Assembly (NCBI RefSeq): GCF_020745735.1
Contig: NC_083409.1
Coordinates: 19,364,341-19,428,340, forward strand
Reading direction: 5' to 3'
Length of the DNA stretch: 64,000 nt
DNA from: Hemiscyllium ocellatum
Taxonomy: Eukaryota
A model generated the notes under the pieces. That model had not been told where the DNA came from. It made no database searches and saw only the letters and a list, made by a program, of their open reading frames with translations. Each line of letters opens with the position of its first letter. The first letter of the stretch is position 1. Position numbers and translations under genes: made by a program. Shown in pieces: positions 10,119-53,500 of this stretch.

Positions 10119-10124
10119 AAAATG

Positions 10125-11029: not shown

Positions 11030-11150
11030 GTTCCACAGTTTAATGAAGAGTCCAGAAGATTATAGCTTTTGGTTATTTCCTGATCTCATTGTTGCTGTCT
11101 ACAAGGCTGTGAAGGACACAGAGTGGAAGAAGTACTTTCCAAAAGAATAG
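11030..11150 (+). pseudogene. RNASEL: RNase L-like terminal coding exon, arm A copy (ORF intact; preceding KEN exon deleted)
   Basis: Acceptor acttttcag|G, phase 2, then [39 protein letters not shown], colinear with recalled human RNase L C-terminus [37 protein letters not shown]. Confidence 0.85.
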
Positions 11151-11269
11151 AGGCTGCTGCTGTCTTCAAAGGGCTGCCATCTCTTGAGCGGAAATGAGAC
11201 AGAACCACATGCTTCAGGGCTAGAATGGAAAGAAGGAACTTACATTTGTATCACAGAATCCCTATAGTG

Positions 11270-28810: not shown

Positions 28811-31800
28811 ATCCTGGATTCCCATCTGCAGCTGCAGAAACACCTATTGATTGTCCTCACTATTGAATCTCCTCTCACTATCACTCTTCCAGTCTTCCTT
28901 GTGACCCCCTGGACAGCCGAGCCCCCGTGGTGCCCTAGACTTGGCTATGGCTGCACTCCCGAGATGAACCATCATTCTCATCAGGATTCTGAACTGAATC
29001 CTGTTTGGAGAGTGGGATGCACTCAGAGGATTCCTGTACTAGCAGCTTGGTCCTTTTGGACTGTCTGCTGCTTCCCCATTCCCTCTCTCAATGACATGGC
29101 CTCCATATCTTTCTGCAGCAGTGAGTTCTACAGATTCACAAACCTATGGCAGAAGGAATTCCTCCTTATCTCACTTCAAAAGGGTCTTCCCTTCACTCTG
29201 AGGCTGTGCCGCCATGTCCCAGTCTCTTCCCCTGTTGGAAACATCTTCTCCGTGTCCACTCTAGATAGGTCTCTCAGCATTCTGTAAGTTTCAATGAGAT
29301 TCCCCTCATCCTTCTGAACTCCATTGAGTCCTCAACTGTTCCTCATATGATAAGCCCTTCATCCCTAAGATCATTCTTGTAAAACTCTTCTGTACACCCT
29401 CCAATGCCTGCACATTCTTCCTTATATACAGGGCCCAAAACTGCTCAGAATACATGAAGCCTTATACAGCTTCATCAGTACATCCCTGTTCTTGTGTTCT
29501 AGCCTTCTTGAAATGAATGCTGACATTGCATTTGCCCTCCTAACTGCCAAATGAACCAAGATGCTAATGTTAAGAAAATCCTAATTATGACTCCTCAATC
29601 CCTTTGTGATTCAGATTTCTGAATCCTTTCCTCATTTAGAAAACAGTCTATGCCTTTATCCTTCCTACTAAAGCGCATAAGCTCACACTTTCCCACATTG
29701 TATTCCATCTGCCACTTCTTTGTCCACTCTCTGAGCTGGATCAACTTCTTCTTCAGATTCTCCACTTCCTCAACACAACCTGTCCCTCCACTTATCTTTG
29801 TGTTGCCTGCAGATTTGACAGCAATGCCATCAGATCCTTTATTCAGATCATTAATTAATAATTCAATCATAGCTGTAGTCCCAGCATGGACCTGAGCAGA
29901 ACCACATTAGTCACCGGTTGCCATCCTGAAAAAGATCTTTTTATCCTACTCTCTGCCTTCTGCCAGGCGGCTAATCTTCTACCCGTGCCAAGAACTTGCC
30001 CCTAACACCATGGGCTCTTCTCTTCTTCGGTAGCCTCCTATATGGCACTTTGTCAAATGCTGTCTGTATATCCAAATAGATCACGTCCACTGGTTCTCAT
30101 TTATCTAACTTGTTCATTCCTTCCTCCAAGAATTCGAACAGGTTTGTCAGGCCTCCCCTTGATGAAGCCATGCTGGCACAGCCCGACTTGACCATACCCT
30201 TCCAACTCCCCTGCAATCTCATCCTTAAACTGAAGTCTACAATCTTACTCATGACTGAGTTCAGACTAACCAGCCTATAATTTCCTGTCTTCTGCTCCCC
30301 TCTTTTCCTAAACAGGGGCGTTACATTAACCATTTTACAGTTCTCTTGGACTCTCCCTGACTCCAGTGATTCCTGAAAGATCACCGTCAATGCTTCCACA
30401 ATCTGCTCAGCTATCTCCTTCAAACTCTGGGGTGTAGTCTATCCAGTCCGGCTGATTTATCCATCTCAGAATATTCAGCTTCCCCAGCACCTTCTCCTCA
30501 GTGATAACCATTACTCTCATCTCTGCCCCTGAATCTCTTTAAGTTCTGGTATACTACTGGTGTCTTCCACCATGAAGACTGATGTAAAGTCACTATTCAG
30601 ATCCTCTGCCATTTCCTTGTTCCCCGTTAGTACTTCTCCAGCCTCATTTTCCAACAGTCCAACATCCAGTCTTGCCTTTCTCTTAGCTTTTATATTTCGA
30701 CAAAAAAAAGTCTTGCAATCTTCTTTTATATTACCAGCTGGCTTACACTCGTATTTCATCTTCTATCCCCTTCTTACATTATTAGTGATAAGCTTACAGG
30801 ATCTGTGGGTTTTAAAATAGAGAATAAAGTATAAAAGCAATGAACTGATGCTCCACCTCTATAAATCACTGATTAGACCATATTTGGAGGATTGTGTTCA
30901 GTTCTGAGCACCTTATTTAATGAACAATATTAAAACCCTGGAGAGAGTTCAAAGGAGTTTTATTGGAATGATACCAGGAATGAGTGGTTTTCGATACAAG
31001 GAAAGCTTAGAGAGATTGGGCTTATTCTGCTCTGAGCAGAGAAGATTAAGAGGTGATCTTATAGAGTTGTTCACGCTTTTGAACAATTTTTGACAGGGTT
31101 AAGAAGGATATTCTGTTTCCATGAGTTGGTATCTCTGTAACTATGGGTAACAATTTCAAGATGGTCAGCAAGACAGCTAGGAGTGAGATGAGGAGGAATG
31201 CCTTGACAAAGGGAGTTGTTAGGATTTGGAAAATGCTGCCTGACAGGATGGTGGAGGTGGATTCTGTTGGAGGTTTCAACGTGTATATTTGAAATTAATG
31301 AAGATAGAGGGCAACAGAGATCAGACTGGAGAGTGGGGCTGGCTGGACAGCTCTTTCTAGAACCAGCACAGACATGATGGGTTGAATAGCCTCCTTTTGT
31401 ACTGGAAATTCTATTATTCCATTTCATCCTGTCAACTCTTTGCTTTCCTCAGGTCTTGTTCAATTTCACTCCTGCATTTTCTATCCTTCTCTCAGCTTTC
31501 TGCAGGATTGAACACTAGATAACCAACATCACCTTCCCTGTTTGGTCTGACCTACTCTGCCTGCTTTGACACATCCCGGACTGAGAGTCTAGATTTGTAC
31601 ATCCCCACCCTTACTCATTGTGGGAACAGATTCTGAATGATCTCTGTCTCGTCCTTCAAGGCCTCCCACTGCCCTGACACTGAGTTCCCGTCCAGTCGCT
31701 GTTTCCAGTCCACTTGTACCAAATCACCGCACAATTTAGTAAAATGGTTCATTTCCAAATGAAAACTTTTACCCAGGCTCCATGGTTCACCATTTCCATC

Positions 31801-32154
31801 CCTAATCTCAATCTCACTGAGTTCTGATCACTGTCACTGAAATGCTCCCCCATTGATAGCCCTTCCAGCTGTCCACATTCATTCCCTACACAATGGTCTA
31901 AAACTGTCCCTTCTCTCTCTGCTGCGTCACCATCACCTTCTCAGGGGCAATTAGGGATGGGTAATAAACGCTGGCCCTGCCAGTGACACTCACATCCCAA
32001 GAAGCAATTTGAACAATGTCTGTTCTTTTGTCGGGTTTGTTCGGTATTGATTACAAATGTTCAAATGGATTGTTTTGCCAGTTAATGTTCGAAGAGGTGA
32101 AACCCCTTTGAATTAAAATTCGAAGGGATTAAAATTGTTTCTCTTGTCTTTCAG

Positions 32155-32265
32155 ACCGTGACAACTCTCAGCCGAAGCTGACCCTGCTGCACCCCTCCCG
32201 GGAGCAGATAAATGCCAAGGGCACTGCCACCCTGGTGTGCCTTGCCAATCACTTCTATCCCGATG
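32155..32265 (+). pseudogene. IGKC: Ig kappa constant exon C2, 5' third only
   Basis: tctttcag|AC CGT GAC...: RDNSQPKLTLLHPSREQINAKGTATLVCLANHFYPD, then fused to sequence lying ~1 kb downstream in the C1 copy (reads on as AIGQ*). Confidence 0.93.
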
Positions 32266-32784
32266 CAATTGGCCAGTGACAAGCAGTGTCCTTCTTGGAG
32301 AGCAATGCTACATGATCAAACAGTGAAGGGGAAGGTTGTGCACAGTGGAAATAGACTGCTGCCCTGAGCTGATTGGCTGCATTTCAGCAGGTCATTGTCA
32401 CAATTGGCTACTTTGCCTGTCAATCCATTACATGTCTGTTGTAGGTGATATTGACAGCCAATCAGCAATCACTTTTAAATGATCCATTTGATCTGGATTC
32501 TGTCAAGGTTGCAAAGAGTACAGAAACTGAAGGCTGTTAGGACTCAATAATTACAATCTGAAGCATTCCCTCCTCACTCTGTTGGTCCAGACGCAGCTGG
32601 TGGGATCGCACTGTGCACTCTCTGTTGTATGCCTGGTAGCACCTGAAATGATGTTCGGCCTATCACAGATACTGCAGGCTGTGTGTTTCTGTAAGTGTGA
32701 GTGTATTACTTAATGCTGCTTGTACATGTCTCTTTGAGGTATGAGTATGAGTATGAGTGTGTGTGTGTGTAGGGGAAATTACAC

Positions 32785-33395
32785 AGACAGATACCTACAG
32801 GCAGCACTGAGTAACACACCCACATTAAGAGAGACACCTCCAGGCAGCACTGAGTAACATGCTCATGCTCAGAGCCACACCTACAGGCAGCATGGAGTGT
32901 GAGCATTTTACACAGTGCTGCCTATCTCTCTGACTGTCTGTGTTACTTAATGCAGCCTGTCGGTGTCTCTCTGAGGTATTTGTCTCTTAGCAGTGGATAC
33001 AGAATGGGCTTTGTGGTGGAGATTAAAGATTAGGCTTTAATCTTCTCAAATCATGAATGAAAAACAGTTCAGCTAATTCAGTCTGAGATGGCAGCTCATT
33101 AAGATGGCCAAATTTCCCCAGTTGCCTGAGGAGAGACACTGACTGGCGGAACTGTGTAACCTGCTCACGCTCAGGGAGACACCTACAGGCAGCATGGAGT
33201 GTGAGCATGTTACTCGGTGCTGTCTGGCTCTCATGTGTGTGTTATTCTGTTCTGATCGTCAGTATCTTACTGAGTGTGAATGTGTTACTCTGTGATGTCT
33301 GTAGGTGTCTCTCTAAATGGGTGTGTTATTCTGTTATGATCGTCAGTATCTGACTGAGTGTGAGTATGCTACTCTGTGATGCTTGTAGGTGACTC
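32785..33395. repeat. ~43-bp degenerate minisatellite (GACACCTACAGGCAGCACTGAGTAACA...) in both orientations, plus a ~425-bp-period duplication (32965-33110 and 33390-33525)
   Basis: Direct reading; three units are also present in arm A at ~14885-15005. Confidence 0.65.
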
Positions 33396-36300
33396 TGAGG
33401 TATTTGTCTCTTCGTGGTGGATAGAGAATGGGCTTTGTGATGGTACTTGAAGATAAGGCTTTAATCTTCTCAAATCTCAGATGAAAAACAATTCAGTCTG
33501 AGATGGCACCTCAGTGAGATGGTCAAAGTTAAAAATCACACAACACCAGGTTAGAGTCCAATAGGTTTATTTGGAAGTACAAGCTTTCAGAGTGCTGCTC
33601 CTTCATCTGGTCGCTAGCAGGGCAGGATCATAGTTTACAGAATTTACCGTGAAATTGAGTTGGCAGCTGAGAAAGGTGAATACTGAGAGTGTATTCTCAG
33701 TAAGGGAGGGATTTCAGAGTCAGTGCACACTGTGGTCCCTCATGTGTTACCCGATTACAAGGGGATTTTCTGGAGCCAGGGTCATTGCAGTAGTGGCTGC
33801 CTGCCCAGCTAATGCTGGTGAGCCATAGTCATATTTCAATGGTCAATTAGCCCTAAACTAAATGCAGCAATATTACCTTCCAGGGAGGGGAGGTTAAACT
33901 CTTGCAGCCCCAAGGGGCCCAATCTCACACATTCCTGAACACAATGGGCAATTTTAGCATGACCAATTCACCTAACCTGCACATGTTCGGAAACCCACAC
34001 AGACACAGCGAGAATGTGCAAACTGTACAGAAGCAGTCACCTGGGGCTGGAATCAACCTGGGTCCCTAGTGCTGTGAGGCATCAGTGCTAACCACTGAGC
34101 TACCTTGCCACCCATTAAAAAAAGCCCAAAAAGTTGAGCTTTTGTTAATCTCCGTGAGCCTGAGGTGATATAAACTATAAACACACAACCCTCTGCCAGG
34201 GAAGGTAGTGGAGGGTGGAAACCTCACAATCTTTAAATAAAATAACATTCAAGGATCTGGGACAAGTGCAGGAAGTTGGAATTAGAGTGCCTTTCATGGT
34301 AGCTATGTTGGTGCAGACTCAATGAGCCAAAGGGCCTTTTCTGCTCTGTATCCATTTATGCTCCATGCTGAGAGGACAGTGCAAGTTAATGGTGACTAGG
34401 TTAGGCTGTTCCAAATGGCGAACTCATCATCAAGGGTCAGAGGAAATGGCTCAAGCTTCAGGGAAGGCCTAAGAAGGTGCTTGGAATGAAGGTCAAGGCT
34501 AATGGAGATAAAGTCAATGGAGACTGAGCGAGGGCACAGGGTGCTGGCTGGCATCTCCAGGAGTTGTAATGAGGCATGTGGGGACAAGAGGGGAGTGTGT
34601 CGGAAGGGAGTGCAGTTTCAGATGAAATGCGACCTTTGCCGGCAGCGATATGACCTTGATGTCCCTGACTGTGTCAGGCTCACTGGCTGCTCTTCGTGTG
34701 ATTACACACAGCCACTTGTCTGGTCACCACGCAAAGCCTTGCTCATGTCTACACTACCATCTAACCACTGTCTGCACCCACTATCTACACCCAGCATCCA
34801 CAGCCACTGTCTGCACCCTTCAATTACACCTCCCATATTTCTGCTGTTGTAAGTTGTATCCAATAATTCCATTAAGATTACTGCAACAGAAACCTGAATT
34901 TCAGAATTGGCAATGATTATCTTCAAACCCTGACCTTCAAAGTCTGTGTTCCACAATGAGCTGATTAATATTAATTACTGAATCCCATTTGATTTCTGTG
35001 ATGGCAGGTCTGATGCATAAGGAGAGGTTGAGGTGGTAAGGATTGTGTTCACTGGAGTTGAGAAGAATGAAGGAAGGGAATCTTGGAGAAAGCTCTAAAA
35101 TTGGAACCAGACAAGACAAATGGAGTTTGGATGTTCCCAATGGTGCAAAGTTCAGCATCAGTGCTCATAGTTTAAGGCTGAGGGGTAAACCCTATAGGAT
35201 AGAGACGATGAAAAATGTCTTCACACAGAGAGTGGTGAGCCTGTGGAATTCTATGTCACAGAAAGTGGTTGATGCCAAAACATTATGTTTTCAAGAAGGA
35301 GGTAGAGATAGCTCTTGTGGCTAAAGAATCAAGGGATACGGGGTAGGGAGGGATTACAGTATAGTGCTCAATGATCAGCCACAATTATTTTGAATGGCAG
35401 AGCAGGCTGGAGGGGCTGAATGGCCTACTCCTGCTCCTATCCTCTATGTTTCTATGGAGCGTAAAATAGATTGCCAGATGGAGGTCACTCAGTCAGATGG
35501 GTTAGTATCCATTCACAGATTCCACCCACACCATTCCCCTTCCATTTTAATTGGACCCACTCCCTCTCTTCCTGCGTTTTTGTTATTTGACCAGTGACCA
35601 CACCTCCCCACCACCACGTCCCACCCACGTCACTCCCCCCAACCCTGGCAGGAGCTGTGCTTGTCACCCATTGCTTGTTTTAACTTACTAATTGGGTGAT
35701 GTGATGGTGAGGTTTTCAAAGGCTGGAAGAGCTGAATTCTTATCGCCTTTTGTGCTGATTTTGTTGTATGCCTCGATAAAAATATGGACGACATAACACT
35801 ACTGCCTCACAGAGCCAGGGAGCCAGATTCAAGAGTCAGACAGCACAGAAATAGGCCCTTCGGCCCACCATGTCAATGCTGACCAACAACCACTGAACTA
35901 CACTAATCCCATTTACCTGCAGTTGTGTCGAGCTGACTATGCCCTGGCGTTATAAGTGCTCATCCAAATTTTTTTAAAGGTTGTGAGATTTTTAGCCTGC
36001 ACCACCCTCTCAGGCAGCATGTTCCACATAGCTACCACACACTGGGTCAAAAAATACTTTCACCTTAATCTTATGACCCCTGGTCTTAAACAGGTCTGGG
36101 TGAGGAGCGGAGGCTGCAGAACAGTGTGAGAGGTCAGGAGTGGAGAGAGGGAGAACAGTGTGAGGGTGAGGAACGGAGGCTGGAGCAGGAAGATGCTTGT
36201 GTTCTGGAAAGTAGTGCATATAGCGAAGAGATCCAAGAGCTGGAAGGAATCGTCTCTGTGCTTCCGAACAGAAGTTTTATGGTGGGAAAGAGATTAAATC

Positions 36301-38314
36301 AGGATATAATGAGGACCAGGAACAAAGGCTGCTCATTAATTACAAATGACTTTAATCCTTATGTCGATTGTTTATAGTCAGAATTTTCTTTTTAATTTAT
36401 TCACAGGATGAGGACATCACTGACTAGGACAGCATTTATTACCCACCCCTAATTGTCCCAGAGGACAGTTAACAGTCATCCACATTGCTGTAGGATTGGA
36501 TTCCCATGTTGGCCAGACCAGGTCAGGATGGCAGATCCCTTCCCTAAAGGACATGAGTGAACCAGATGGGTTTTCCCGACAATCGACATGGATGCATGGA
36601 CATCGTTAGGCTCCTAATTACAAATTTTTAAACTTGATTTCAAATTCTCCCATCTGCCATGGTGGGATTTGAGCCTGTGACCCCAGAATCACATCTGGGT
36701 CTCTGTGCATTAATCACAGAAGGTTAGTGTGTAGGTACAGCAAGTCATCAGGAAAGCTCATAGAACGTTATGGTGTGTTGTGAGGGGAAACTGAATGCAA
36801 GGCTTCATTGCAAGATGCAAGATCCTGAGGAGCCTTGACCGGGTGGATGTGGAAAGGATGTTTCCTCTTGTGGGAGAATCCAGAACTAGGGATCACAGTT
36901 TAAAATTAAGGGAGAGTCCAATCAAAACAGAGATTCAGAAACATGTTTTTCCTCTCAGAGTTGTCAGTCTTTGGAATTCCCTTCCTTAAAAGGCAGTAGA
37001 TGCAGAATCTTTAGATATTTTTAAGGCAGAGGGAAATAGATTCTTGATGACTGAAGGGATGGAATATTATCAGAGAACGTAGAGTTGAGGTTAAAATCAG
37101 ATCAACCATCGAAGGCTGTCGCTTATATTTTCTACCTGCAGATTAAGCTGCATGTGCAATAGGCCTCATCTGCACAGTGTTTCCTCCAGCCTTTCACAAT
37201 GATATGTGAAAGATACTGGCCCCACAAACAGTCCTTTAACTCTGAGTTGTTTTATTTACACAATAAAACACATTACAAGGCATGAAGCAGACATTACAGC
37301 AAGCAATAATGGGCAGCACAGAGCCTCAAAGGTTAGCACTACTGCCTCAGTTCGGGACCTGGGTTCGATTCCACCCTCAAGTGACTGTATGTGGAGTTTG
37401 CACATTCTCCCTGGGTCTGTGTGGGTGTCCTCTGGGTGCTCCGGTTTCCTTCCACAATCCAAAAATGTGCAGGTCATGTGAATTGGCCATGCTAAATTGG
37501 CCATGGTGTTCGGGGATGTGTGGGTAGGTGCAGTTGTCAGGGAAAATGTCGAGTAATAGGGTGGGGGAATGGAATGCTCTTTGGAGATTCGGTGTGGACT
37601 TGTTGGGATTCTGTGAATTGATCTCAGTCTGTGCAGCTTGCAGACTCACAAGTGATTAACTGATAGGTGGAGTACACTCACAGGGGTGGATTGTCTCAAA
37701 GGCAATATGTTCACACACCACACAGCCACTGAACATCAAGAGGGGATAGTTACGTTCTCTCTTGTTGGAGACAGTCATTGGCTGGCAGTTGTGTGCCACA
37801 AATGTACCCTTATTGATGTTCCAAGCCCACATCTCTGGCGGTAAACTGCTTTGGAACATCCTCAGGTGATAAAAAGTGCCGTACATGTGGGTACACGATG
37901 GCTCAGTGGTTAGCACTGCTGCCTCACCGCACCAGGGACCCACCTTAGGCAGGTCTGTGTTGAGTCTGCACATTCTCCCTGTGCCTGTGTGGGCTTCCCT
38001 GGGTGCCCTGGTTTCCTCCCACAGTCCAAAGATCCGCAGCCTCAGTAAATTGGCCATGCTAAATTGCCCATAGTGTCAGGGATGTGCAGGCTAGGTGGAT
38101 TAGCCATTGGAAAATACAAGGATAGAACAGGGGGCTGGGTGGAGTGCTCTTCAGAGGGGCAATGTGGACTTGATGGGCTGAATGGCCTACTTCCACACTA
38201 TAGGGATTCTGTGATACAAATGCAAGTTCTTTCTTTCCATTCTAGCCCTGAAGCATGTGGTTCTGTCTCATTTCCACTCAAGAGATGGCAGCCCTTCGAA
38301 GACAGCAGCAGCCT

Positions 38315-38435
38315 CTATTCTTTTGGAAAGTACTTCTTCCACTCTGTGTCCTTCACAGCCTTGTAGACAGCAACAATGAGATTGGGAAATAACCCAAAGC
38401 TATAATCTTCTGGACTCTTCATTAAACTGTGGAAC
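38315..38435 (-). pseudogene. RNASEL: RNase L-like terminal coding exon, arm B copy
   Basis: Same acceptor and phase; [39 protein letters not shown]; 3 differences in 121 nt from the arm A copy. Confidence 0.85.
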
Positions 38436-41400
38436 CTGAAAAGTACAATTAATGTCCAAGTCAATGAAGATATTTCTCAGCAATCCGCTAAATGCTGAGT
38501 TTTAGTACTCAGCAGGCCCCAGGAGTCAAAATAACTGAGTAGATAATTGCTCTGAATTGCTCATAAGTGTCGCCTTCACATTTCAGGAGGCTTTGATCAA
38601 AAAGGTTGCTTACTCCTCTCCAAAATACAGCTTAAACTCAGCTCCAACTCCCAACCAGCCAGCTGAGAGCGGAGCCCTGTGCAAACTGGAACCTGGTCAG
38701 TGGGAGCACTGTCACCTCTGTCTCAGAAGCTTTGTCTAGTTAAAACAGAGACTTAGCTAGACAATCATTTAGCACAGAAACAGACCCTTTGGTTCAACTC
38801 ATCCATGCCAACCAGATATCCGAAATTAATCTATCCCATTTTGCCAGGATTTGGCCCATATCTCTCTAAACTGTTACTATTCATAAACCCATCCAGATGC
38901 CTTTTAAATGTTATAATTGTAATAGCCTCTGGCAGCTAATTCCATACACGCACCACCCTCTGCATGAAAACGTTGCCCCTTAGATCCCCTAAAAGTCTTT
39001 CCTCTCTCACCTTAAACATATGGCCTCTAGTTTTGGACTCACATACTCTGGGGAAAAATACCTTGGCTGTTTACCTTATCAATGCTCTTCATGATTTTAT
39101 AAACCTCTATGAGGTCACCCCTCAGCCTCCATTGCTTCAGTGGAAATAGCCCTCTCCCGATAGCTCAAAACCTCCAACCCCAGCAACATGCTTACAAATC
39201 ATTTTTCCACCCTTTCAAATTTAACAACATTGTTCCTATAGCATGAAGACCAGAACTGAGCCCTGTATTCTCAAGGTGTCCTCAACAATGGCTACTTTGG
39301 GGGACAGCTAGAACATGACAACCCAATTCCTATACTCATTTCACAGACCAATAAAGGCAAGTGTATCAATCCCCAACTTCACTCCTGTGTTTACCCATGG
39401 CTTCGCTTTCAAGGAACTGTGAATCTGCACTCCAAGGTCTCTTTGCTCAGCAGCACTCCCCAGGACTTTGTCCTTATTTGCCTTACCAAAATACAACACC
39501 TTACATTTATCTACGTTATCTCCATCCGCCACTCCTTATCCAATGGCCGATCTGAACAAGCATTGATCATATATTATAAATTTGCGCATATAGAAAGCAT
39601 TGGGGAGGCCACATCTGAAGTATTGTGTCCAATTTTGGTCTGCTTATTTGAGGTTGGATGTGGTGACACTGGAGGATGTTCTGAGGATGTTCCCCAGACT
39701 GATTCCAGGGATGAAAGGGCTGTCCTATGAGGTGCAGTTAAATAGATTGGGCTTGTATCGCTGGAGTTCAAAAGAATGAGGAAGGATCTGATTGAGCGAT
39801 AGAAAATGTGAAAGGGGATTGATAAGGTGGATGTTGAATAGATGCTCCCCCTTGCAGGATAGTTTCGAACAAGAGGTCATCAATATAGAGTGAGGGGTGG
39901 TAGGTTCAAAACTGAGATGAGAAGAAACTACTTCTCCCAGAGGGTTGTGAATCTGTGAAACTCAATGTCCCAGAGTGCAGTGGAGGCAGAATCAATCAAC
40001 AGATTCAAGAACGATGTGTTTCTGATGAAAAGCAAGATAAAGAGCGATGGGGAGCAGGCAGGAGAGTGGAGTTGAGACCAGGATAAGATCTGCCATGGTC
40101 ATGTTAAATGGCGGAGTGGGCTCGAAGGGCTGACTTGCCTCCTCCCGCTCCTAATTCCTATGTTGAGCACACAGTCAAGGCTGACACTGCAAAACTGAAG
40201 GAGCTGTTGTCTTTCAGGTGAGATACAAAACAGAGGTCCTGCCACAATCTATCGAACTGTACTATCTCCCCCAGTGACAAATGCTGGAATTTAAATTCAA
40301 ATCACAAAGCAAGCCTCATTAATGCTGACCATGATAATGATCCCTGAATGCTGTCCAGCCTCAGCCTTACCCAGTCTGGACTTCATGTGACTCCAGCCCC
40401 ACAGCAATCTGGTTAACTCTTAGGTGCCTTGAGAGGTCACAGCAAGGCCAGCAGTTCAAGGGCAATTAGGCTTGGGTAACAAATGCTGATCTATGCCAGT
40501 GACACCCACCTCCCAGAAAACAGAATGCAATAGAGATTGATGTCAGCCAAAATTGTCAGATCAGACTCCCAATGAGATGGGGAGATGGTTAAAGATGTAT
40601 TCAGCTCATTACGGAACAGGTCTCCACTTGTTTATACATCGTCGCTGACAAAATAAGGGGAAAAAATAGAGAACAAAAGGTCAGAACACTCAAATGTGGG
40701 AATATCAGTGAGAATTCAGGCAACTGAAGAAAGATACGAAGAACTGCAAAGGAAGACAAAAAGAAAGCAAGAGTTACAGAAAGTGATGGAGAAAGAGACC
40801 TGCAAAGGGTCACAAGAATAACACAAATGTTTTACACAAAAATTAGAAAATCAAGAGGGCTCCAGTGCAATGTGAGCCCTTTAAAAACAAACTGGGAATA
40901 CCACAAATTAGACGAAGGGAATGGCCGATGTGTACAATAATTAGTTGTGTCAGTCTTCACAGTCAAGGAACGGGATAATGCAGCCTCCATCGTGGTTAGT
41001 AACGATTTGAAGACTGGAATTCATGAAACTTGATACGTGCCAAAAAACAGCATTGGAGAGTGAGCAGCTCTAAAGGCTGACAGATCTCCAGGACCTCAGG
41101 GGCTTAAAGGAAGGGTGGGGGGGGGGGTGGAGGAGGTGGGGGGCAGTGTGCGGAAGAAGTTTCAGAAGCTTTTCCCATCAGGTTCCAAAGCAGCAACCAT
41201 TCCTTTAGTTTGGAAAATGTCCTGCTGTCACTCCACGGGTTCAAGAAAGATGAGAGAGGGAACCGAGGAAATTATATCCTGGTCAATCTAACATCTCTTT
41301 TGGGGGTTTCATTGGAATCAATAATTAATAACTGAGAGAATGAATACGTAGAGAATTAAAATAGCCCACATAGATTTGTGATGGGTAGGTTCTGACAAAT

Positions 41401-43061
41401 GAACCAAATGCATGAACTAAATTAGTTGAATGGGCATATAGTCTTATCAACTTTCAGAAGTACTTAATAATTTTCCACTAAACAGTCTGTTGACTAAAGT
41501 TAAAACCCATGGGATTGAAGATGAATGTTTGACTTGGTTCGGAGGTTGGTTTATTGACAAATAACAGAGAAAGAAAATGACGAGTGGTGTTCCACAAGGA
41601 TTCTGTGGTGAGGCCTTAACTACTTACTGTATGTATTAATGAGAATCATAGTTCCACATTGACACGAAGACTGATGGAATAGTAAGCAGTGCAGATGGTC
41701 TTTTTGTTTAAAACTCACTCTGAGGACATGGGTATTGCTATCTAGGCCAACATTTACAACACATTCTGTGTTGCCCTTGTGACTCATGGAATCATCACAC
41801 AGTGTAGAAGCAGGCCATTCAGCCCATCCAATTCATACCAACCCAACGAACAGCATCCCATCTGGACTTACCCCTTTCCTGTACTGCTGCATCTCTCACG
41901 GCCAATCCACCCGGCCAACACATCCCTCGACACTATGTGCAATTTGGCATGGCTAATCCACCTAACCAACACATCTATGAACTGTATGGAAGAAGCCCAC
42001 ACAGACATGGGGAAAATGTGCAACCTCCACACAGACAGTCGTCCCAGCGTGAAATTGAACCCAGGTCCCTGGTGCTGTGAGGTAGCAGCACTGACCATTG
42101 AGCCACAATTCTGCCTTTTGCAAGGTGGTGGTGAGCTGTCTTCTTGAACCACTGCAGTCCATGTGCTGTAGGTAAACCCACAATGTCGTTTGGGAGGGAA
42201 TTCCAAGATTTTCATCCAGCGACTCTGGAGGAACAGTAATATATTTTCAAATCAAGCTTCTATGTGGATTGGAGGGGAACTTGTTTTTGGTAGTGTTCTG
42301 TGTCCTTCTACATGGAAATGATGTGGGTTTGGAAGGTGCTGTCTTAAGAGACTTGGTGTGAATTCCCGCAGTGCATCTTGTAGATGGTGCACACGGCTGT
42401 TACTGAGCATCAGTGGTGGAGGGAGTGGATGTTTATCGATGTGGTGCCAATCAAGCAGGCTGCTTTGTACTGGAAGATATCAAGCTTCTTGATTGTTTTT
42501 GGGGCTGCATCCATCCAGGCAAGTGGAGAGTAACCCATCACAGTCCTATCCAGAACTTAACTGATCTTTTCTTAATTCATTTACTGGATCGGGCATCACT
42601 TGCTATGTCAGCATTTATTGCCCAGAATCAAGTGGGGTGGCACAGCACTGGGACCAAGGTTTAGTTCCCCCCTCAAGCAACTGACTGTGTGGAGTTTGCA
42701 CGTTCTCCCTGCGTCTGCCTGGGTTCCCTCCCGGTGATCTGGTTTCCTCCCACAGTCCACAAACGCGCGGGTTGGGTGGAATGGTCATGGGAAATGCAAG
42801 GTTATAGGGGAGTGGGTCTGGGTGAGATGTTCTTTGGAGAAGCGGTTTGGGTTGATTGGCCTATTTCCACATTGTAGTGATGCTATGAATTTCTTCACTC
42901 AGAGGGTTTTGAATCTTTGGGATATTCATCGATACTTAGGCGTTTGAATAAATTCATGATAGAGATAATACATATGTGGGGAGGCAATGAGTTAATGGTA
43001 TCATCACTAGATTCTTAATCACAAGAGCCAAGTAATGTTCTGGGGGATCTGGGATCACCGT

Positions 43062-43373
43062 GGGGCAGCATGGTGGTACAGTGGTTAGCACTGCTGCCTC
43101 ACAGCACCAGAATCCCAGGTTCGACTTTAGCCTCGGGTGACTGCCTTTTATGGAGTTTGCACATTCTCCCTGTGTCTGCATGGGTTTCCTCCGGGTGCTC
43201 TGGTCTCCTCCCACAATCCAAAGATGTGCAGGTTAGGTGAATTGGTCACGCTAAATTGCCCATAGTCAGGGGTGAATATGGGGAATGAGTCTGGGTGGGT
43301 TACTCTTCAGAGGGTCGCTGTGGACTTGTTGGACCGAAGGGCCTGTTTACATACTGGAGGGAATCTAATCTAA
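43062..43373 (+). mobile_element. HE1 SINE nested inside a SacSINE1-like element; further HE1 copies at ~33930-34110, 41790-42110, 42630-42880, 43540-43820, 57100-57340
   Basis: A/B boxes and HE1 body; host SINE resumes at ~43374. Confidence 0.8.
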
Positions 43374-44179
43374 ATCCTGGCAATGCATGGAGTGGAATTT
43401 TAAATCCAAAAAGACTCTGGAGTTAAGAGTCAAATGATGACCATTGTTGGGGGAGAACCCCATCGGGCCCACTAATATCCATCAGATTGCTGTCCTTGCC
43501 CATACTGACTGACATATGACTCCAGACGCACAGCAACACAGAATCATAGAATCCCTACTGTGTGGAAGAAGGCCATTCAGCCCATCAAGTACAAGCAGCA
43601 TTTCACCCAGAACCAGCCCTCTCTCCTAACCTTACACTTCCATGGCCAATCCAACTAATCTGCACATCTCTGGACTGAGAGAGGAAACTGATGCACCCGG
43701 AGGAAACCTATTCAGACACAGGGAGAACATACACATTCAACACAGACAGTTGCCTGAAGGTGGAATCAAACCCAGGACCCTGGTGCTGTGAGGTAGTGAC
43801 GCCAGCCACTGTGCCACCCATTCCTCATCTCTGATCAAAATGTCTAACCCCTTATTCCCAGGCTGGGGCTCTGCTTTAGAATCCCCAGGTAGGGGCACAT
43901 CCTTCCAAAATCTACCCTGTCAGGGCCCTGGAGAATTTTAAATGTTTCAGTGAAATCTCATCCCAGCCTTCTGAATTCTAGGGAATCCTGACCCAGTTCC
44001 CTCTCTCAACCATTAGACAATCCCTCAGCCCGTCACATGAAATGTTGCTGGGTTTGATCATCTCAGTAAGAGTTTCAAGGAGGGAAGGAGAAAGAAAGAC
44101 TCTTTCTGCTTTGAATCGATGCTAAAAACTGAAAAAAACAGGAAAATATTGTCACTAAGTATTGTTCACATATTCTTAC

Positions 44180-44299
44180 TTTTCATCAAAGTGCTGGGTG
44201 AGGTTTCTTATGAATTTCAGGAGGTCACTGGTGGTGTTCTTATATTCTTTATTCTTGCCTTGTCTCTTGTTCATGTCCATTGAGGAGAATGGAGTCAAC
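44180..44299 (-). pseudogene. RNASEL: RNase L-like KEN/ribonuclease-domain exon with mutated acceptor and +1 frameshift
   Basis: VDSILLN[+G][34 protein letters not shown]|gtaaga versus recalled human [40 protein letters not shown]. Phase-2 donor matches the phase-2 acceptor of the terminal exon; acceptor reads ttctcg rather than ttctcag. Confidence 0.85.
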
Positions 44300-46089
44300 C
44301 GAGAAGGAAATGAGCAGCAGAGTTTGTTTTCTGTGTTGATTAAATTCACCTTGCTTGCTCCTCTGATCACCTGAAGAAAGGGCGAGACTCTGAAAGATTA
44401 TGTTTTCTAATAAACCTGTTGTTCTAATAAATCTGTTGTCGCATGATTTTTGACCTTGTCCTCTGATCACATTCAGGTTATTCCCACGAGCACTGCATGT
44501 TCTTGCTTCTCCAGGTCAGCAGGTGGCGATTTTGACAATGGATTTGACAATGGTCTCCATCAGAGAGGACCCACGAATCAGGGACAGAGACCAGAGATTA
44601 TAGGCCCCGCTCTTGCTCCTCAGTCCCAGACCCGAGCACAACGGGCCCCCTGGCATCCCAGGTCCCGGTTATTACGTCCCAGACCCTGTCCATAATGCAA
44701 ATGGTGCAACTGATCCTTCTGATTTTTCCCAACCTTGCCAGGTCTCCACAAACATTGGGATTCGTTACATTCAGTCTTTGCCATGAAGGACCCTGACTGA
44801 TGGGAAACAGACTGAAATGGGTCAATAATACAGTATTGGGGAGTTACAGATGCAGATTGCCAAGTGGAAATCTGATGCTGTGGCTCTCACAGAGAACGGG
44901 CGGGACTGGGAATTCCTGGATACAAGGTGTTCAGTAAAGATAGGAAAGAGGGAAAACTGCGGGAAGTGGTGAGATTGTTCTGGAGCCAGACAATGCTGAC
45001 CAACCCTTGGCCCTGAGATATGATGGAGATGAAGGGTGAACTGTGCCAGGCTTTAACTCACTGTTACCAGGGTAAAACAGGAATTATCCATTTCACAAGA
45101 GAGTGAATGGAACTAACAAATAGATGCATGTGAAACACCCACCCAATTCCTGAGAGAGGGGGGACAAGAACAGGGACATTCTCAGACAGAAATGATGCTA
45201 AAAATGGTATCACCCCGAGAGAGATGGGTGGGATGGGGAAAGTGACAGCGACAACCCCCAGAGAGTGGGGAAAGTAACACTGACACATTTAAAACTGTAT
45301 TATCACAAGTGAGAATTCAAACAGACACCCATTCCGTCACACGGTGTTGAAGATGCACTGTCCTCATCAAAACATGTTTGAAAACTTCTTCATAACATGT
45401 AAGGGGAGAGAAACATTGATAACTGTATTATCACGAGTGAGGGTCCATTTAAATCTTGGACCATAATGTGAAATGTTCCCAGCCATAAACAACACTGGTG
45501 TATTGACATCATTATCTTATTAAACAATATTAAAACCTTGGTCAACCATGTTCCTGCAGACAGTGCATTTAAAATATCAAGAGTCTTTCCCCATTGTTGG
45601 TTTGATCAGTGACGTAACAAGGAAGCAGCAGCTGCCCCATGAACTCCAACAAAAGAATGAGAACAGGCACTTCATACAGAGCTGGCTCCCGAGAATCCAA
45701 TTCAACAACAATGATCAAAGAACAAGGAACAATACAGCACAGGAACAGGCCCTTCGGCCCTTCAGGCCTGTGCTGACACATTGTGATCTTCCTCACTGAC
45801 ACTGTCTTCACTTAGAGGATTCATATCCCCCTATTCCCTTCCTATTCATGCATTAGTGCAGGTATTTCTTGAATATTTCTATTATGTCTGCTTCCACCCC
45901 TTCCTCTGGCAGTGTGTTCCAGGCACTCAACTCCCTTTGTGTGAAATACTTGCCTCCCACATCTCTTTTAAATTCCCCCGCCCCTTGAACCTCTGTTCCC
46001 CAATCAGTGACCCCTACACCCTGGGGGAAAAAAAAGCCTCGTATTCTCCACTCTACATATCCCATTCACAACTTTATAAACTTCGATCA

Positions 46090-47028
46090 GGACATAGAAC
46101 ATAGAATATCGAACAATACAGTACAGAACAGACCCTTCTGCCAACGATGTTGTGCTGAACACTTGTCCTGGCTTAAGCACCTATCCATGTACCTATCCAA
46201 TTGTCGCTTAAATGTCACCAATGATTCTGACTCTGCCACTCGCACAGGCAGCGCATTCCATGCCATCACCACTCTCTGGGTAAAGAACCTACCCCTGACA
46301 TGCCCCCTATACTTTCCACTCTTCATCTTAAATTTATGTCCTCTTGTAACACTCTGTTGTACCCAGGGAAAAAAGTCTCTGACTGTCTACTCTATCTATT
46401 CTCCTGATCATCTTATAAACCTCTATCAAGTCACCCCTCATCCTTCGCCGTTCCATTGAGAAAAGGCCTAGCACTCTCAACCTTTCCTCGTACGACTTAT
46501 TCTCCAGTCCAGGCAACATCCTCGTAAATCTCCTCTGCACCCTCTCCAAAGCTTCCACATCTTTCCTTAAGTGAGACGACCAAAACTGCACACAGTACTC
46601 CAAATGTGGCCTAACCAAGGTCCTGTACAGCTGAAACATCACCTCATGGCTCTTGAATTCAATCCCTCTGCTAATGAACGCTTGGGCCTTCTTACAAGCT
46701 CTATCCACCTGAGTGGCAACTTTCAAAGAGCTATGAACATAGACCCCAATATCCCTCTGCTCCTCCACCTTACTAAGAACCCTATTGTTAACCCTGTATT
46801 CAGCATTCTTATTTGTCCTTCCAAAATGGACAACCTCACACTTGACAGGGTTGAATTCCATCTGCCACTCCTCAGCCCAGCTCTGCATCATATCTAAGTC
46901 CCTTTGCAGCTGACAACACCCCTCCTCACTATCCACAACTCCACCTATCTTCATATCGTCTGCAAATTTACTGACCCACCCTTCAACTCCCTCTTCCAAA
47001 TCATTAATAAAAATTACAAACAGCAGAG
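46090..47028 (-). mobile_element. Young CR1 3' insertion nested in an older CR1, arm B only; 233-aa RT C-terminal ORF still open
   Basis: ORF 46334-47035 (INDLEEG...KFADDMKIGG...WQMEFNPVKC...); AGGAC flanks both ends; absent in arm A at ~7425. Confidence 0.9.
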
Positions 47029-50000
47029 GACACACCTCATTTTTCCGAATTCCAGTAAAAACAAACCCAGTCTATCCAACCTTTCTTCAGGACTACTATT
47101 CATCATACTTGATAATATCCTGATAAACATTTTCTGTATCGTCTTCAAAACATCCACATCCTTCTGGTAGTGTGGTGACCAGAACTGTATGCAATATTCC
47201 AAGTGTGGCCTAACTAATGTTCAATAAAGCTGCAGCATGACTTGTCTATCCTTATACGCAATGCCCCTTCCAATGAAGGCAAGCAGGCCATAAGCCTTTT
47301 TTACTGCCTTACCTCCCCGTGCTGCCACCTTCAGTGATCTATGAATATAAACACTCAGATCCCTCTGCATATCAATACTCCAAAGGATTCTGCCATTCAC
47401 TGTATAATTCCCACCTTTCAAAATGCATCACCTTACATTTGTCTGGATTAAACTACATCTGCCATTTTTCTGTCCATGCATCCAACTGATCTAATATCCT
47501 GCTCTATCCTCTGACAATCCTTCTCATTATCTGCAACTCTACCAATCTTTGTATCAACCATAAACTTACTCATTGGACCAGCTACGCTTTGCTCCAAATC
47601 ATTTATGGAGATCATGAACAGGAGAGTTCCCACCACTGATCCCTGTGCAACATCACTAGTCACAGCCCTCAATTCTGAAAACCGTTCTTTCATCGCTACC
47701 CTTTGTCTCCTGTGACTAACCTAGTTCTGTGTCCAATGCTGGGAACATTGTAGACAAGACACCTTGTTGCCAGCTCGTGACTGCAACTTGATCTAGTTCA
47801 TTCAGAAAGAGAAAAAGGACAATGTGCAGATTGTTGAACAGGCTCCTACACCTGGGCCTGAGGCAGGAGCCCAAGCTCCAACACACTGGCCTCACTTCAC
47901 ACCAACCTTCACACAGTGCGGGGTCATGAACTCCGGCCATCAATCCCTCTGGGACCGGGATGGAGTGAGGGAACAGGGACAATTGTAGAAGAGGCAATCA
48001 GGAATAAAGCAAGACAGACAGGGTGTGTTGGAAAGAGTTTAATGGAGGAAACATACTTTGTGATACTCAATATTGACATAGTCTACGTGTAGGAGGAGAA
48101 AGTGAAGACTGCAGATGCTGGAGATCAGAGCTGAAAATGTGTTGCTGGAAAAGCGCAGCAGGTCAGGCAGCATCCAAGGAGTAGGAGAATCGATGTTTCG
48201 GGCACGAGTCCTTCTTCAGGAATCTACATGCATCACAGAATGAAAAAAAAGCACAATCTGAAGACAATCTAAAGTCACATCAATGTATTTCTTTTTGATA
48301 TATCATAGCATGCAAGGCATTTTCATTGTGGCATCCTGAGCTGTACTCTCTAAGATTGAGCCAGTTGGATCCTCGCAGAGCCCCAGTTATTTGAACTGTT
48401 CAGTAATGTGGGGATACTGATAGTGGATTGGGGAACACCTGATGAAAGAGCAATGCTTTGAAAACTTGTGATTTCAAATGAACCTCTTGAGTTAGAGCCT
48501 GGTGTTGTGTGCCTTCTGACTTTGTATTGTGCGGGCACAGTGAAACAGCTGCCTTCCAGTAACTATAGAGTACTTGCAATGCAGCTGAGGAGTATGGGTA
48601 ACGACTCCCTCCATTAGCCGTGAACAAACCCGCAGTCATTCCAGTGGATTCCAGTAGGAATGATCTGTCAGTTGATTCCCAGATTTACATGGTTCACCAT
48701 CGACATCTCCAGGACAATTTGGGAAGGGCAACAAATAACCGACACGTCAACGCCCGCCCCATCCCAGGGAAAATCAAAATAAATGGCATACAATTCAAAT
48801 GATCAAACTGGTGAGGCTTGAATTCATCTCTTTAAAAGACTGGAGCCTTGCCCAGAAACAGAGCCTTGAAATGGGTGAATCTGGTTTGCCAGACTGCAAG
48901 GTGGAGTGTCCTTCGGATTAGCAGTGGGATCAGCAAAAAAAATCGTACGCAAAGATCTAACAAACAGCCATCAAAGCGTGCCCCCAAAGTGCAAAGATCA
49001 GTATTTGAAGCTCCACGTCTCCATCTCTATCCTTGCTTGTTGCTCTTCCCTAATTGTTCTGGAGAGAGCGGTAATGAGCCATGAGTGTCTCGAAGAGGAT
49101 CTGACAGAGGGACAAGGTCATGTCCGCGGCCTGAGCACAACTGCCTGACCTGCTGTGCTTTTCCAGCACCACACTTTTCGACTCCGAGCACAACGATCCC
49201 TCAGCAGAATGAGCTGTGGCACAAGAGGAAACGTGGGAGTGTTGGAAAGGCACCGGCAGCCTGGTCAGCCTGCAGAGGGGCAGAAACAGATTTGATGAAT
49301 GAGCTGATATCATCCCGAGCTGAGATGCAGACTCAGGCTTCAGAGCCACACCGTTTACATTGTTACTGACCGTGGCTCCATGGACAATGCTCCTGCCCCA
49401 TCGTCAAAATGGTCATCGGATTGAAAGCCACTTCAGAAATTAGAACACAGAATCCAGACTGAGACCGCGGTACACTGCTGAAAGTTGCACAGTCTCTGGC
49501 ACCATCATTTGAGGCTCCACCACCACCACACCCTGACCACCCCCACCCCACCTCAGGGGGCTCGACAAGATCCCATTCTGAAGAGATTCACTCGGGTGTC
49601 CTGTTCAATATTCAACTATTGCCACCAAATCAGATTTGCCTTGTCATTCGTTTACTGTCTGTGGGACCTCACCATCTTGTCCGTGAATGTGACTGCTCTA
49701 TGCTCACAGCTTTGAATATCCTGAGATGATTTTAAAAAACTGCACCAACAAGAGTTCTTTCCTCATTATCATGTAAAAGGAGAGCAATTAGCAAGAGAAA
49801 ATGCACACTGAGCGTAAACACTGAAGCTTCAGCTGAAAGGCTTTTTGCACCATGTTAACCTGCTCCCTGGGCATTTCCTTCCAATGTCCGAGATGGTTAT
49901 CAGGCTGGGATGGAGGCTGACAGATCACATGGAGTCCTTCAGGCAAGGTACACAAGGGCACAGTCTAGGCTTGCTGCAAACCTTGAAGGGCTGGGGGATT

Positions 50001-50194
50001 TTCTGTGGCAGTTTCTCGTGCACATCCTCCATGGAATTATCACAGATTTTACTGAAATGGAATTAACTCAGAGAGGAGAAGGAAATGGGAAGAATTAACT
50101 AGACAAGGGTGAGCATCAAGAGAGGTGGGAGTGTGTGGAAAATTCAGTGCCATTAAAATTTCCAACTGGGTTTCACAAGGAAAACTCAGCAACT

Positions 50195-50505
50195 GGGTGG
50201 CATGGTGGCACAGTGGTTAGCACTGTTGCCTCACAGCACCAGGGACCTTGGTTCAATTCCCGCCTCAGGCGACTGACTGTGTGGAGTTTGCACGTTGTCT
50301 GCGTGGGTTTCCTCCGGGTGCTCCGGTTTCCTCCTACAGTCCAAAGATGTGCGAGTCAGGTGAATTGGCCATGCTAAATTACACTGTAGTGTTAGGTAAG
50401 GGGTATATGTAGGGGTATGGGTGGGTTGCGCTTCGGCGGGTCGGTGTGGACTTGTTGGGCCGAAGGGCCTGTTTCCACACTGTAAGTAATCTAATCTAAT
50501 CTAAT
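50195..50505 (+). mobile_element. HE1 SINE, arm B only
   Basis: Full head to ctaatctaatctaat tail; empty site in arm A at ~3790-3800. Confidence 0.9.
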
Positions 50506-53500
50506 TTTCAAATCGTTACCAGGATATAACAGGGAGAATCCTCACTGACATAAACAGGCTGAGTGTCAGAGACCCTAAGCCTCCGGTGCCCGACTCTCTA
50601 TGAGGCATTACAGTTATGTTCAACAGACACTGTTCATGTGTCAATAAGGGAGACTTGGTGACATGGGGTTATATTATAATCAATGATCAGAGAGGTACAG
50701 ATTAAAGATAAATGGCCAAATGTTAAGAGGGAACATAAGGAAACACATTTTCACCCAAAGGGTGGTAGCAGTCTGGGACTCACTCCCTGTAAGGGTGGTT
50801 TAAGCAGAAACTCTCCCATAACATTGAATTATTTCGATGTGCAACTGTGATGCCAAGGTATACAGGGCTACAGGCCGAATGCTGGAAAATGGAATTAGAA
50901 TGGTGAGATGGTTGTTTTGACTGGCTTTGGCTCATTGGACTGAAGGGCCTTGTTCTTGTAGACCTGTGACAGATGTCTGACTCTGCCAGGACTCCAGCAA
51001 TGTGGCTGACCCTTACCTGCCATTTGAAAGGCCGAGCAAGCCACTCAGTTTCAGGGCAGGTAGGGATGGAGAACAAATACAGTGACACCCACATCCCAGG
51101 AAAGAATAAACAGCCTCAGTAACACAGTCACCTGAACCTGCAGGTTTTCATGTCCCACTCCAGAGACTGGAGCACTATCCTGAGGCTGGCAAAGGCAAAG
51201 ATGCCATCTGCTGGATGATCGGTTAAACCACTGCCCTCTCAGGTCAATGTGAATGTAAGGGTTTTCTGATCATCTCAGACAAAATCCCTTCACCACCACC
51301 CCCCCCCCCCCCCCACCCCACAGTGTGCTGACCAATACTTCTCTTATAACCAATGGCATCAACACAAATACAAAAACAAAATACTGCAAATCTCAAATAG
51401 AAGCGCGATGTTGGAAAAATGGAACGGTGCAGCCTCTGTGGGGAGAGGAGGAATTAACTTTTTGAGGTTCAGTGATGTTTTATCAAAAAAGCAGCACCAT
51501 TTTATTTTATTCCATTTTAAGTTGTTTTATTTATTTTATTTAAATTTTGTTTATCAAATTTTAGCCCGTTTGATTGGCACCACTTCTACACACATCCATT
51601 CCCTCCACACCAACACTCACTAACATCTGTGTGTTCTATTTACAAGATGCACTCCAATAAATTCATTAAAAGTCCTGAGGCAACACCTTCTAAACCCATG
51701 ATTACTTGAATCAAGATGGACAAGGGCTGAAGATACAATGGGAACATCACCCCAGCAAGTTCCCTCTCAGCTATTCATCAGTTTAACTTGGAAATACCAT
51801 CACTGGGTCAGAATTCTGGAATTCCCTTCCTCAGGACATTGTGGGTCTACCTACAGCTCAGGACAAGTAAAGATGGACAGTAAAAAGGCTGGTAAAAGTA
51901 AGAGTAGGTGTGATTTGGGACCAGAAAGTGAGACTGTGATGTTTCAGTTATTCCTGGGCATTAGTGTGATCACATCTCAAATACCGTATTGTGTGTAGTT
52001 GTGGTCTCCTTATTGAAGGAAGAATATAAATGCATTGGAGGTGGTTCACAGGAGTTTTACCCAATTGATCCCTGGTATGAGTGGGCTGTGTGATGAGGAA
52101 GGATTGGAAAGGCTGGCCTTGTTCGCAGTGGGGTTTAGAAGAGTGAGGGGTTTTCCTGTCCCACTATATTCTCCAACCCCCATCTGCCTCCCTTGTGTGT
52201 CATACCCTCCTGCCCCTTACTACACGAGGAATTGAACTGTTTAGTCTTGAGGCCTATAACTTCCTTCTGGAACTAATCCTCCCGGTATCTCCGGCACTCC
52301 CTGATGTATCACTGCTTTTTCAATTCAGCCTTCATTCCAAACTCCCTGAGTGGGAGTTCCTGTAGTTTTATACATTCACTGCAGATGTATTTACCCTGAA
52401 TCATTTCAATGCAATAAAGAAATGTTGATCTCACTTACAAATGAAAAATATCCATTCCTTCGTTAGAGCAGTAATTGTCTTCGGTCTGTTTTGAAGTTTC
52501 AGTACTTTCCATTTATTAAACTTCCCGAATGGACATGTCCTGAAGCAGTCTATTTATACAGCCCCTCAAACTAAACAAATCCCAGATTATATTTTCTTGT
52601 TCATCATTTTGTTTCATTCAAACCAAGTGCATGTGCAGGCTCCCAGCAGCTGAAGTGACAGTTCCAAATCAGTTTGGAAAAGCAAAGGTAGACTCCTTCC
52701 CTGAGTTCACCAAACTACCACACTGACCAAACTTCCCAGCATTCCCCTCTGTGCTGGCTGCACTTAGTGCGAGCTGCAGCATGTAGGCCACCCTAAATTT
52801 ATACTGTTTCTGATTTATATCACTCCATTCTGTTGTGCTGTTGTTTAGGATATGGGTTAAGCTCACTTATTTCTCAATCAAAAGCTTCCTTCTTTCAGCC
52901 TGAGAGAGACTTTACATTTGCAAACAGGAAATATGACTTCAATGTTGGAATCTGTTCTCAGGATTGATGGGCTCGATGATTTGATTCAGTGAAATAACCT
53001 CGTCTAATCTCTTCAGGGGCCGACATTTTAGGTGTGACTCTTCTTCAGGAAGGGGGGATAGGTGTGAGGGGAGCTGCAGATAAAGGGGTGGTTTGGAGCA
53101 AGATGGTGAGGTGGAGATAGGTTGAGAAAGATAAAGAGTATGACCTGATTGGTCGATGGGAGAGATGAATCCAGTATCATCCCACCCCTCAACCAACCAG
53201 GTCCTATCCTCTACCTGTCTGCACCTATCCCCACTGAACCACTCTGCCCCCACCACTCCCTTTATTTGCAGCTCCCCAAACACCCACCCACCCCACTTCC
53301 TGAAGAAAGGTTACACCCAAAACGTCAACTTCTGCACCTCCTGATGCTTCCTCGCTTACTGTGTTCTACCAGCCTCCTACTTGTCAACCTTGGATTCCAG
53401 CATTTACAGTTTTTTTTTGTCTCTAATCTCTTCAAAGCCCAGGATGAGTGTGAGGAGATTGGGCTTTGATGGAACTACCCACAGAATGAAGTCAAAAGAA

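Follow-up and report, generated by a model that had tools for sequence, protein, structure and literature searches.

A probable truncated RNase L pseudogene fragment beside light-chain C exons in the shark Hemiscyllium ocellatum

Does a gene for the antiviral effector RNase L lie hidden in a shark immunoglobulin light-chain locus? A preliminary description of a 64,000-nucleotide stretch of Hemiscyllium ocellatum DNA (contig NC_083409.1, positions 19,364,341 to 19,428,340; hereafter the window) had placed such a gene, as a remnant of two minus-strand exons, about 6 kb from a light-chain C exon. The exons agree with that description in sequence, strand, frame and peptide, and the distance is indeed 6.0 kb, but what lies there is no gene. 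Only its last two coding exons are present and the penultimate one is disabled, so the word remnant was well chosen. We consider this to be a truncated, unprocessed RNase L pseudogene fragment, copied by DNA duplication, with a probability of about 0.9.

Each of the two exons alone matches the KEN ribonuclease domain of RNase L, and they stand in the correct order. The penultimate exon (exon A) matches Pfam PF06479 at profile positions 49–78 with E 1.2e-4 and PDB 4oau at chain positions 622–655, and the last exon (exon B) matches them at 96–125 with E 0.014 and at 668–698, respectively. The spliced peptide of 73 residues scores 40.5 bits against PF06479 (gathering score 23.3, E 3.6e-10) and covers profile positions 51–125 of 127. 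Its top match among 1.84 billion proteins is a Mustelus asterias ‘2-5A-dependent ribonuclease-like’ protein (E 5.4e-24, 75% identity), and this match stops exactly at the C-terminus of the Mustelus protein. The C-terminus of Chiloscyllium punctatum RNase L shares 93% amino-acid identity with the peptide over its 73 residues.

The catalytic Rx4H motif, whose role has been described (PMC3710099), is kept together with the upstream D and Y in the pattern Y..D.....R....H, as aligned to 4oau and 4o1o. As named in the preliminary description, these residues are equivalents of human Y655, D661, R667 and H672, a numbering that we infer from chain 4oau, which is offset by 20 residues. The position and phase of the last intron agree with those in the working RNase L genes of sharks and in a bat ortholog, the latter used as a stand-in for human.

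The penultimate exon is decayed. It encodes the KEN segment with the D...R....H catalytic motif and is 126 nt long versus 125 nt in the working genes of C. punctatum (XP_072429488), C. plagiosum (XP_043555869), H. ocellatum (XP_060686052) and M. asterias (XP_078074076). Against these four genes, and as read from one assembly, it carries four disabling changes in total (Table 1). Because of the inserted base, the initial seven codons (VDSILLN) are in a different frame from the remainder of the exon, and the in-frame ORF runs ...TPFSSMDMNK where ...VDSVLLNDMNK is expected.

The A-to-T change that makes the premature stop also makes a GT (44179–44178), 6 nt upstream of the ancestral donor, and it is this new GT that had been taken as the donor before. 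Its use would drop two residues (K-E) at the exon junction. The phase-2 splice compatibility described earlier is only apparent, as it depends on a donor made by mutation, and neither the ancestral acceptor nor the ancestral donor survives. Since the new donor keeps the frame, a transcript begun elsewhere could in principle join exon A to exon B. An open frame with working splice sites is not found in the fragment.

Table 1. Positions of the RNase L fragment, its lesions and the surrounding features in the window
Feature	Position	Strand	Basis or remark
Last RNase L coding exon (exon B), intact	38315..38435	-	Acceptor, open frame and stop codon as in working genes
Retained last intron, with SINE/LINE fragments inside	38436..44173	-	blastn collinearity 83–91%; divergence profiles
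Ancestral donor lost, AT vs GT (GA/GTATGT to GAATATGT)	44172..44173	-	Exon alignment
In-frame TAA vs AAA in working genes	44176..44178	-	Exon alignment
Penultimate RNase L coding exon (exon A), decayed	44174..44299	-	Alignment to the same exon in four working genes; Pfam, PDB
One-base insertion, GG vs single G in working genes	44277..44278	-	Exon alignment
Lost splice acceptor, CG vs AG in four of four working genes	44300..44301	-	Exon alignment
Remainder of the preceding intron, ~690 bp	44300..44985	-	No homology to working genes past ~44985
Additional copy of exon B, intact	11030..11150	+	Opposite arm of the inverted duplication
Light-chain C exon remnant, truncated after 46 codons	32133..32270	+	Tail-to-tail with the RNase L fragment, 6.0 kb apart
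Light-chain C exon in the left arm	16285..16632	-	TCG-to-TAG nonsense codon at 16459–16461
Separate light-chain C exon	55431–55778		Between the fragment and the window-edge piece resembling intron 2
Left arm of the large inverted duplication	1358..19694		self-blastn
Right arm of the large inverted duplication, containing the fragment	29087..52992		Pairs with 1358–19694; self-blastn 80–94%

Full-length shark RNase L, with its six or seven coding exons, matches the window at the last two exons only. Of the 811-residue Mustelus protein, residues 728–811 alone match, and the 13 other homologs used match over the corresponding part only. A tblastn search of the whole 64 kb with all 14 homologs at E up to 1 gave no match in the window to the ankyrin-repeat 2-5A sensor domain or the pseudokinase domain, and the 19.7 kb upstream of the fragment contained none of the exons for the ankyrin, kinase and N-terminal KEN parts. 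The first 50 positions of the PF06479 profile are also absent from the window. In the working genes, the next exon upstream of the penultimate one sits 1.7–7.5 kb off.

At the nucleotide level, window positions 37730–44977 are collinear with 28892–35843 of the working locus L002 and likewise with two others, L003 and L004. This collinearity begins ~690 bp before the penultimate exon, takes in the last exon and the intergenic DNA, and extends past the C exon. The last intron is part of it, and its retention means that the fragment is not a retrocopy. Near 44985, within an old repeat-like piece, the collinearity breaks abruptly, and with it ends the DNA homology to the working genes of Chiloscyllium and Hemiscyllium.

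In a sensitive blastn of 44900–64000 against the three working loci, only repeat-like pieces, the third C-exon region (~54865–56188) and a 172-bp piece (63808–63979) were found. The last of these, at the window edge, resembles intron 2 of the working genes in the same orientation, and the DNA outside the window may hold further parts of a rearranged RNase L copy. The stretch 61466–61716 was considered as a continuation of the intron across the breakpoint and rejected, as it has 80% identity and overlaps the part already present at 44914–44985. It is a repeat with a third copy in the LINE region 27649–27731.

The last exon has one D-to-N change within its FPDL motif, while its copy in the left arm keeps FPDL and has 95% amino-acid identity. 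The left arm holds no penultimate RNase L exon. In both arms, the last exon is intact and only 1–3% diverged from the working genes, and the flanks reach 9–16%. In the tree, the two window copies cluster together outside the three hemiscylliid working genes with a support of 0.92–1.0. Around exon B, the branch between the window copies and the working genes measures 0.007, compared with 0.054 in both flanks, and the terminal branches are not shortened.

Selection on the last exon was set aside, as the low divergence spills into the non-coding flanks and the tree fits conversion better; the substitutions in the exon are too few for a selection test. Its intact look probably reflects its shortness of ~120 nt and possibly gene conversion. 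The mismatch between the arms, about 5% in their inner part, is minimal around exon B at 1.5–2.5% versus a mean near 5%, and comparably low 200-bp bins occur elsewhere in the arms, such as one of 2.0% at 14324–14521.

No complete V-J-C cluster was found in the window, which has a single V fragment (23702–23881) and no J motif. J motifs were absent also from the examined flanks of the working RNase L loci, and an Rfam scan of the window gave no matches.

The adjacency to a C exon is not special to the window copy, which has inherited it from the working RNase L locus present in sharks. Working RNase L of Mustelus, Chiloscyllium and Hemiscyllium stands tail-to-tail with a light-chain C exon 7–9.5 kb downstream, a neighbourhood seen in two shark orders. 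Annotations of RNase L exist for many elasmobranchs, and a literature search of limited coverage found no paper on its linkage with light-chain C. For the protein of the chimaera Callorhinchus, and not for the window fragment, RNA cleavage activated by 2-5A has been demonstrated (PMC10400998).

Could the two exons belong to the 3′ end of an RNase L paralog that is intact or expressed, with the upstream exons missed or located beyond the window? The kept catalytic motif, the intact last exon and the intron-2 match in the same orientation would suit such a paralog, but it is made highly improbable by the CG acceptor, the +1 frameshift and the TAA in the ancestral frame, by the lack of any match at E up to 1 to coding exons 3–5 in the 19.7 kb upstream, by the broken collinearity and by the separate C exon that intervenes. 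That the peptide resembles RNase L by chance, or came from IRE1 or a retroelement, is barely conceivable given its best protein match. In the PDB, human RNase L is clearly ahead with E 5.8e-11 versus 0.23 for the best IRE1 chain, and the nucleotide collinearity with RNase L genes extends over 7 kb, intron included.

Another reading is that the fragment, chiefly the 500 bp around its last exon, has been retained as a regulatory element that lies downstream of C and serves the adjacent light-chain unit, or as an exon in a transcript that is chimeric or non-coding. The short branch and the lowest mismatch between the arms lie just there, the unit has been duplicated along with C on at least two occasions in the window, and the low divergence of the last exon could hint at constraint instead of conversion. 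However, the unshortened terminal branches favour gene conversion over constraint, other bins are equally low and the neighbouring C exons are themselves dead. Judged from the sequence, such a role seems unlikely.

We therefore return to the pseudogene fragment made by DNA duplication. Since working RNase L stands tail-to-tail with the C exon, duplication of the light-chain unit probably took the RNase L tail along. In this segmental duplication, the far breakpoint probably fell within the RNase L intron before the penultimate exon, so that the last two exons, their intervening intron and the intergenic DNA alone were copied. A later, second duplication of the block in inverted orientation would have produced the two arms of the window. 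The fragment, which has no promoter, ankyrin sensor or pseudokinase domain, has decayed, its penultimate exon losing its acceptor and donor and gaining a frameshift and a stop, and the left arm has lost this exon entirely. By its sequence, it should yield no RNase L protein and have no antiviral function, and close relatives possess working RNase L genes.

As a gene, the fragment is of no importance, while it is of modest worth as a marker. It indicates that the duplication of light-chain units dragged the RNase L tail along, and such tail fragments provide a simple tracer for the descent of light-chain clusters. A broader proposal, for which we see roughly even odds, is that the RNase L tail is part of the repeat unit by which the kappa-like light-chain clusters of this shark multiplied, that all remnant-bearing clusters descend from the one abutting the working RNase L gene, and that the unusually low divergence around the last exon marks either continuing conversion by that gene or, downstream of C, an element under conservation. 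If so, RNase L remnants would serve as dated fossils for reconstructing the growth of the cluster array. Annotators should be cautious with KEN-domain matches in the light-chain loci of sharks, as these are likely to be pseudo-exons that have hitchhiked there.

Among known systems, the KEN domain of IRE1 belongs to the same HEPN/KEN fold family (PF06479) as the fragment, but it is a far weaker match and the gene structure and flanks here are of the RNase L type. The RNase L of cartilaginous fishes shares with the fragment the acceptor position (phase 0), the last-intron position (phase 2), the stop codon and the Rx4H motif, whereas the fragment is without the ankyrin, pseudokinase and N-terminal KEN exons and its penultimate exon has destroyed splice sites, a frameshift and a stop. 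The fragment also resembles unprocessed partial pseudogenes from segmental duplication of a neighbouring gene family, as it shows their truncation at a sharp intronic breakpoint, retained intron, flanks collinear with the parent locus and disabling mutations. Unlike in typical ones, the driver appears to be the unit duplication of shark light-chain clusters, followed by re-copying in an inverted repeat.

The minus strand of 38000–44600 contains two open stretches, as the preliminary description had reported, the upstream one with a stop codon at 44176–44178 and the downstream one with a good acceptor (ttttcag/G at 38436/38435) and a stop at 38315–38317. Each exon separately matches both Pfam PF06479 (Ribonuc_2-5A) and the PDB structures 4oau and 4o1o of RNase L, and the two exons fall at consecutive positions in these matches. 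The joined 73-residue peptide scores 40.5 bits against PF06479 (gathering score 23.3) and is 93% identical to the C-terminus of Chiloscyllium punctatum RNase L. Its top match among 1.84 billion proteins is the 811-aa Mustelus asterias '2-5A-dependent ribonuclease-like' protein (E 5.4e-24), and the match extends to the very C-terminus of that protein. The assignment of both exons to the RNase L KEN domain is thus borne out by the Pfam, PDB and protein-database matches.

Chance, IRE1 and retroelement origins are all refuted, since in the PDB the peptide matches RNase L with E 5.8e-11 versus 0.23 for the top IRE1 chain and the top protein match is a shark RNase L. The catalytic residues are kept as claimed; alignment to the RNase L structures shows the Rx4H motif, which is catalytic in the KEN/HEPN nucleases (PMC3710099), and the upstream D and Y.

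Only the tail of RNase L is present. The Mustelus protein has the complete ankyrin, pseudokinase and KEN architecture; for this protein, as for 13 further homologs, matches to the 64-kb window are confined to the last ~84 residues. The working gene has six coding exons across 29.5 kb in Mustelus (L001) and six or seven in C. punctatum (L002), H. ocellatum (L003) and C. plagiosum (L004), and the two exons here are the last two of these genes. At the DNA level, window 37730–44977 (minus) is collinear with L002 28892–35843 and with the corresponding regions of L003 and L004; the collinear stretch starts ~690 bp before the penultimate exon and reaches ~600 bp beyond the stop. In the multiple alignment, homology to the working genes ends near 44985, and the window sequence farther out is unrelated to the working intron. 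The next upstream exon lies 1.7–7.5 kb away in the working genes, and no upstream RNase L exon was found in the window's 19.7 kb upstream of the fragment.

A 172-bp piece at 63808–63979 matches intron 2 of three species' working RNase L genes at 91–94% identity; it shares the orientation of the fragment and heads toward the window end. From this piece, a rearranged RNase L copy may continue past 64000.

The penultimate exon differs from all four working genes by four disabling changes (see the table). The A-to-T change behind its TAA stop also makes a new GT at 44179–44178, which the preliminary description took as the donor. This lies 6 nt upstream of the ancestral donor, so phase 2 is kept, and its use explains why the described peptide misses the K-E residues present at the exon junction in every working shark protein. 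Hence, the proposed compatible phase-2 splice sites hold as to the phase and the good last-exon acceptor, but the donor is mutation-made and the ancestral one is lost. Acceptor, reading frame and stop codon are all preserved in the last exon, where the conserved FPDL motif has a single substitution, D to N. In the bat ortholog (L005), the penultimate exon also starts in phase 0 and the phase-2 last intron falls at the aligned codon. By this sequence comparison, the intron position is truly that of RNase L.

Features of the window and of the C exons beside working RNase L genes (window positions unless a locus is named)
Feature	Position	Strand	Remark
Penultimate RNase L exon	44299-44174	-	right arm
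Acceptor lost	44301	-	AG to CG
Extra G	44277/44278	-	codons 1-7 and remainder in different frames
In-frame stop	44176-44178	-	AAA to TAA
Ancestral donor lost	44173	-	GA/GTATGT to GAATATGT
Last RNase L exon	38435-38315	-	right arm
Second last-exon copy	11030-11150	+	left arm; intact
Light-chain C exon, left arm	16285-16632	-	TCG-to-TAG stop
Light-chain C exon, right arm	32133-32270	+	ends after 46 codons
Third light-chain C exon	55431-55778	-	open frame intact
LINE reverse-transcriptase ORF fragments	46334-47035, 25888-28387, 4433-4882	-	Pfam RVT_1 for 46337-47035
C exon, Mustelus	L001 46485-46832		intact
C exon, C. plagiosum	L004 42957-43304		intact
C exon, H. ocellatum	L003 38740-39074		frameshift or deletion in second half

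Structurally, the window forms a large inverted duplication, in which 1358–19694 pairs with 52992–29087 at 80–94% identity. It is palindrome-like, the identity peaking near the centre (94%) and dropping outward (80%), and LINE-type repeats are located at or near the duplication breakpoints. The 9.4-kb spacer between the arms holds LINE pieces and the single light-chain V fragment found in the window (23702–23881); no J motif was found there.

In both arms, a light-chain C exon stands tail-to-tail with the RNase L tail. The third C exon encodes a C1-set Ig domain whose top solved match is a light chain, and beside it neither V, J nor RNase L exons were detected. Its DNA is 85–87% identical to the C region adjoining the working RNase L genes.

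Downstream of working RNase L, the C-exon region is likewise tail-to-tail, 7–9.5 kb from the RNase L stop, while in C. punctatum it runs off the end of the locus sequence examined. The arms are collinear with the working loci from the RNase L intron through to beyond the C exon. The simplest reading would be that a light-chain unit abutting RNase L was duplicated with one breakpoint inside RNase L, carrying along its last two exons, and that the two arms arose through a subsequent inverted duplication.

Nothing in the left arm matches 39317–45252, and therefore it has no penultimate exon. The arm-to-arm mismatch jumps sharply from ~5% to 17–19% at 10733/38733, within a LINE fragment, which points to a repeat-mediated deletion or replacement. 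This step is where the left arm lost the penultimate-exon segment.

In trees of the shared DNA, the two copies from the window pair up and fall outside the working genes of the three hemiscylliids, with support of 0.92–1.0. The mismatch is about 5% between the arms, 9–12% between the window and the working genes in the unique flanks and 4–6% among the working genes of three species. The divergence is mosaic, being 1–4% between the window copies and the working genes around the last exon (38750–38250), where the internal branch is 0.007 versus 0.054 on both sides with normal terminal branches. The low-divergence 500 bp has its counterpart at 10720–11230. We suspect gene conversion, which at these few sites fits better than purifying selection.

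Many sharks and rays have an annotated RNase L, and the enzyme of a chimaera was shown to work with OAS (PMC10400998). Our literature search found no paper on RNase L/light-chain linkage in sharks. The proposed innate antiviral effector gene is not here, since only the last two exons are present with broken splice sites and frame; calling it a remnant was right, as it is a tail-only copy with disabling changes. The fragment amounts to an ordinary pair of hitchhiking pseudo-exons, of some value as a marker of the light-chain cluster duplication. Unlike working RNase L, it has neither sensor domain nor pseudokinase, whereas by the tests for an unprocessed partial pseudogene it belongs to that class.
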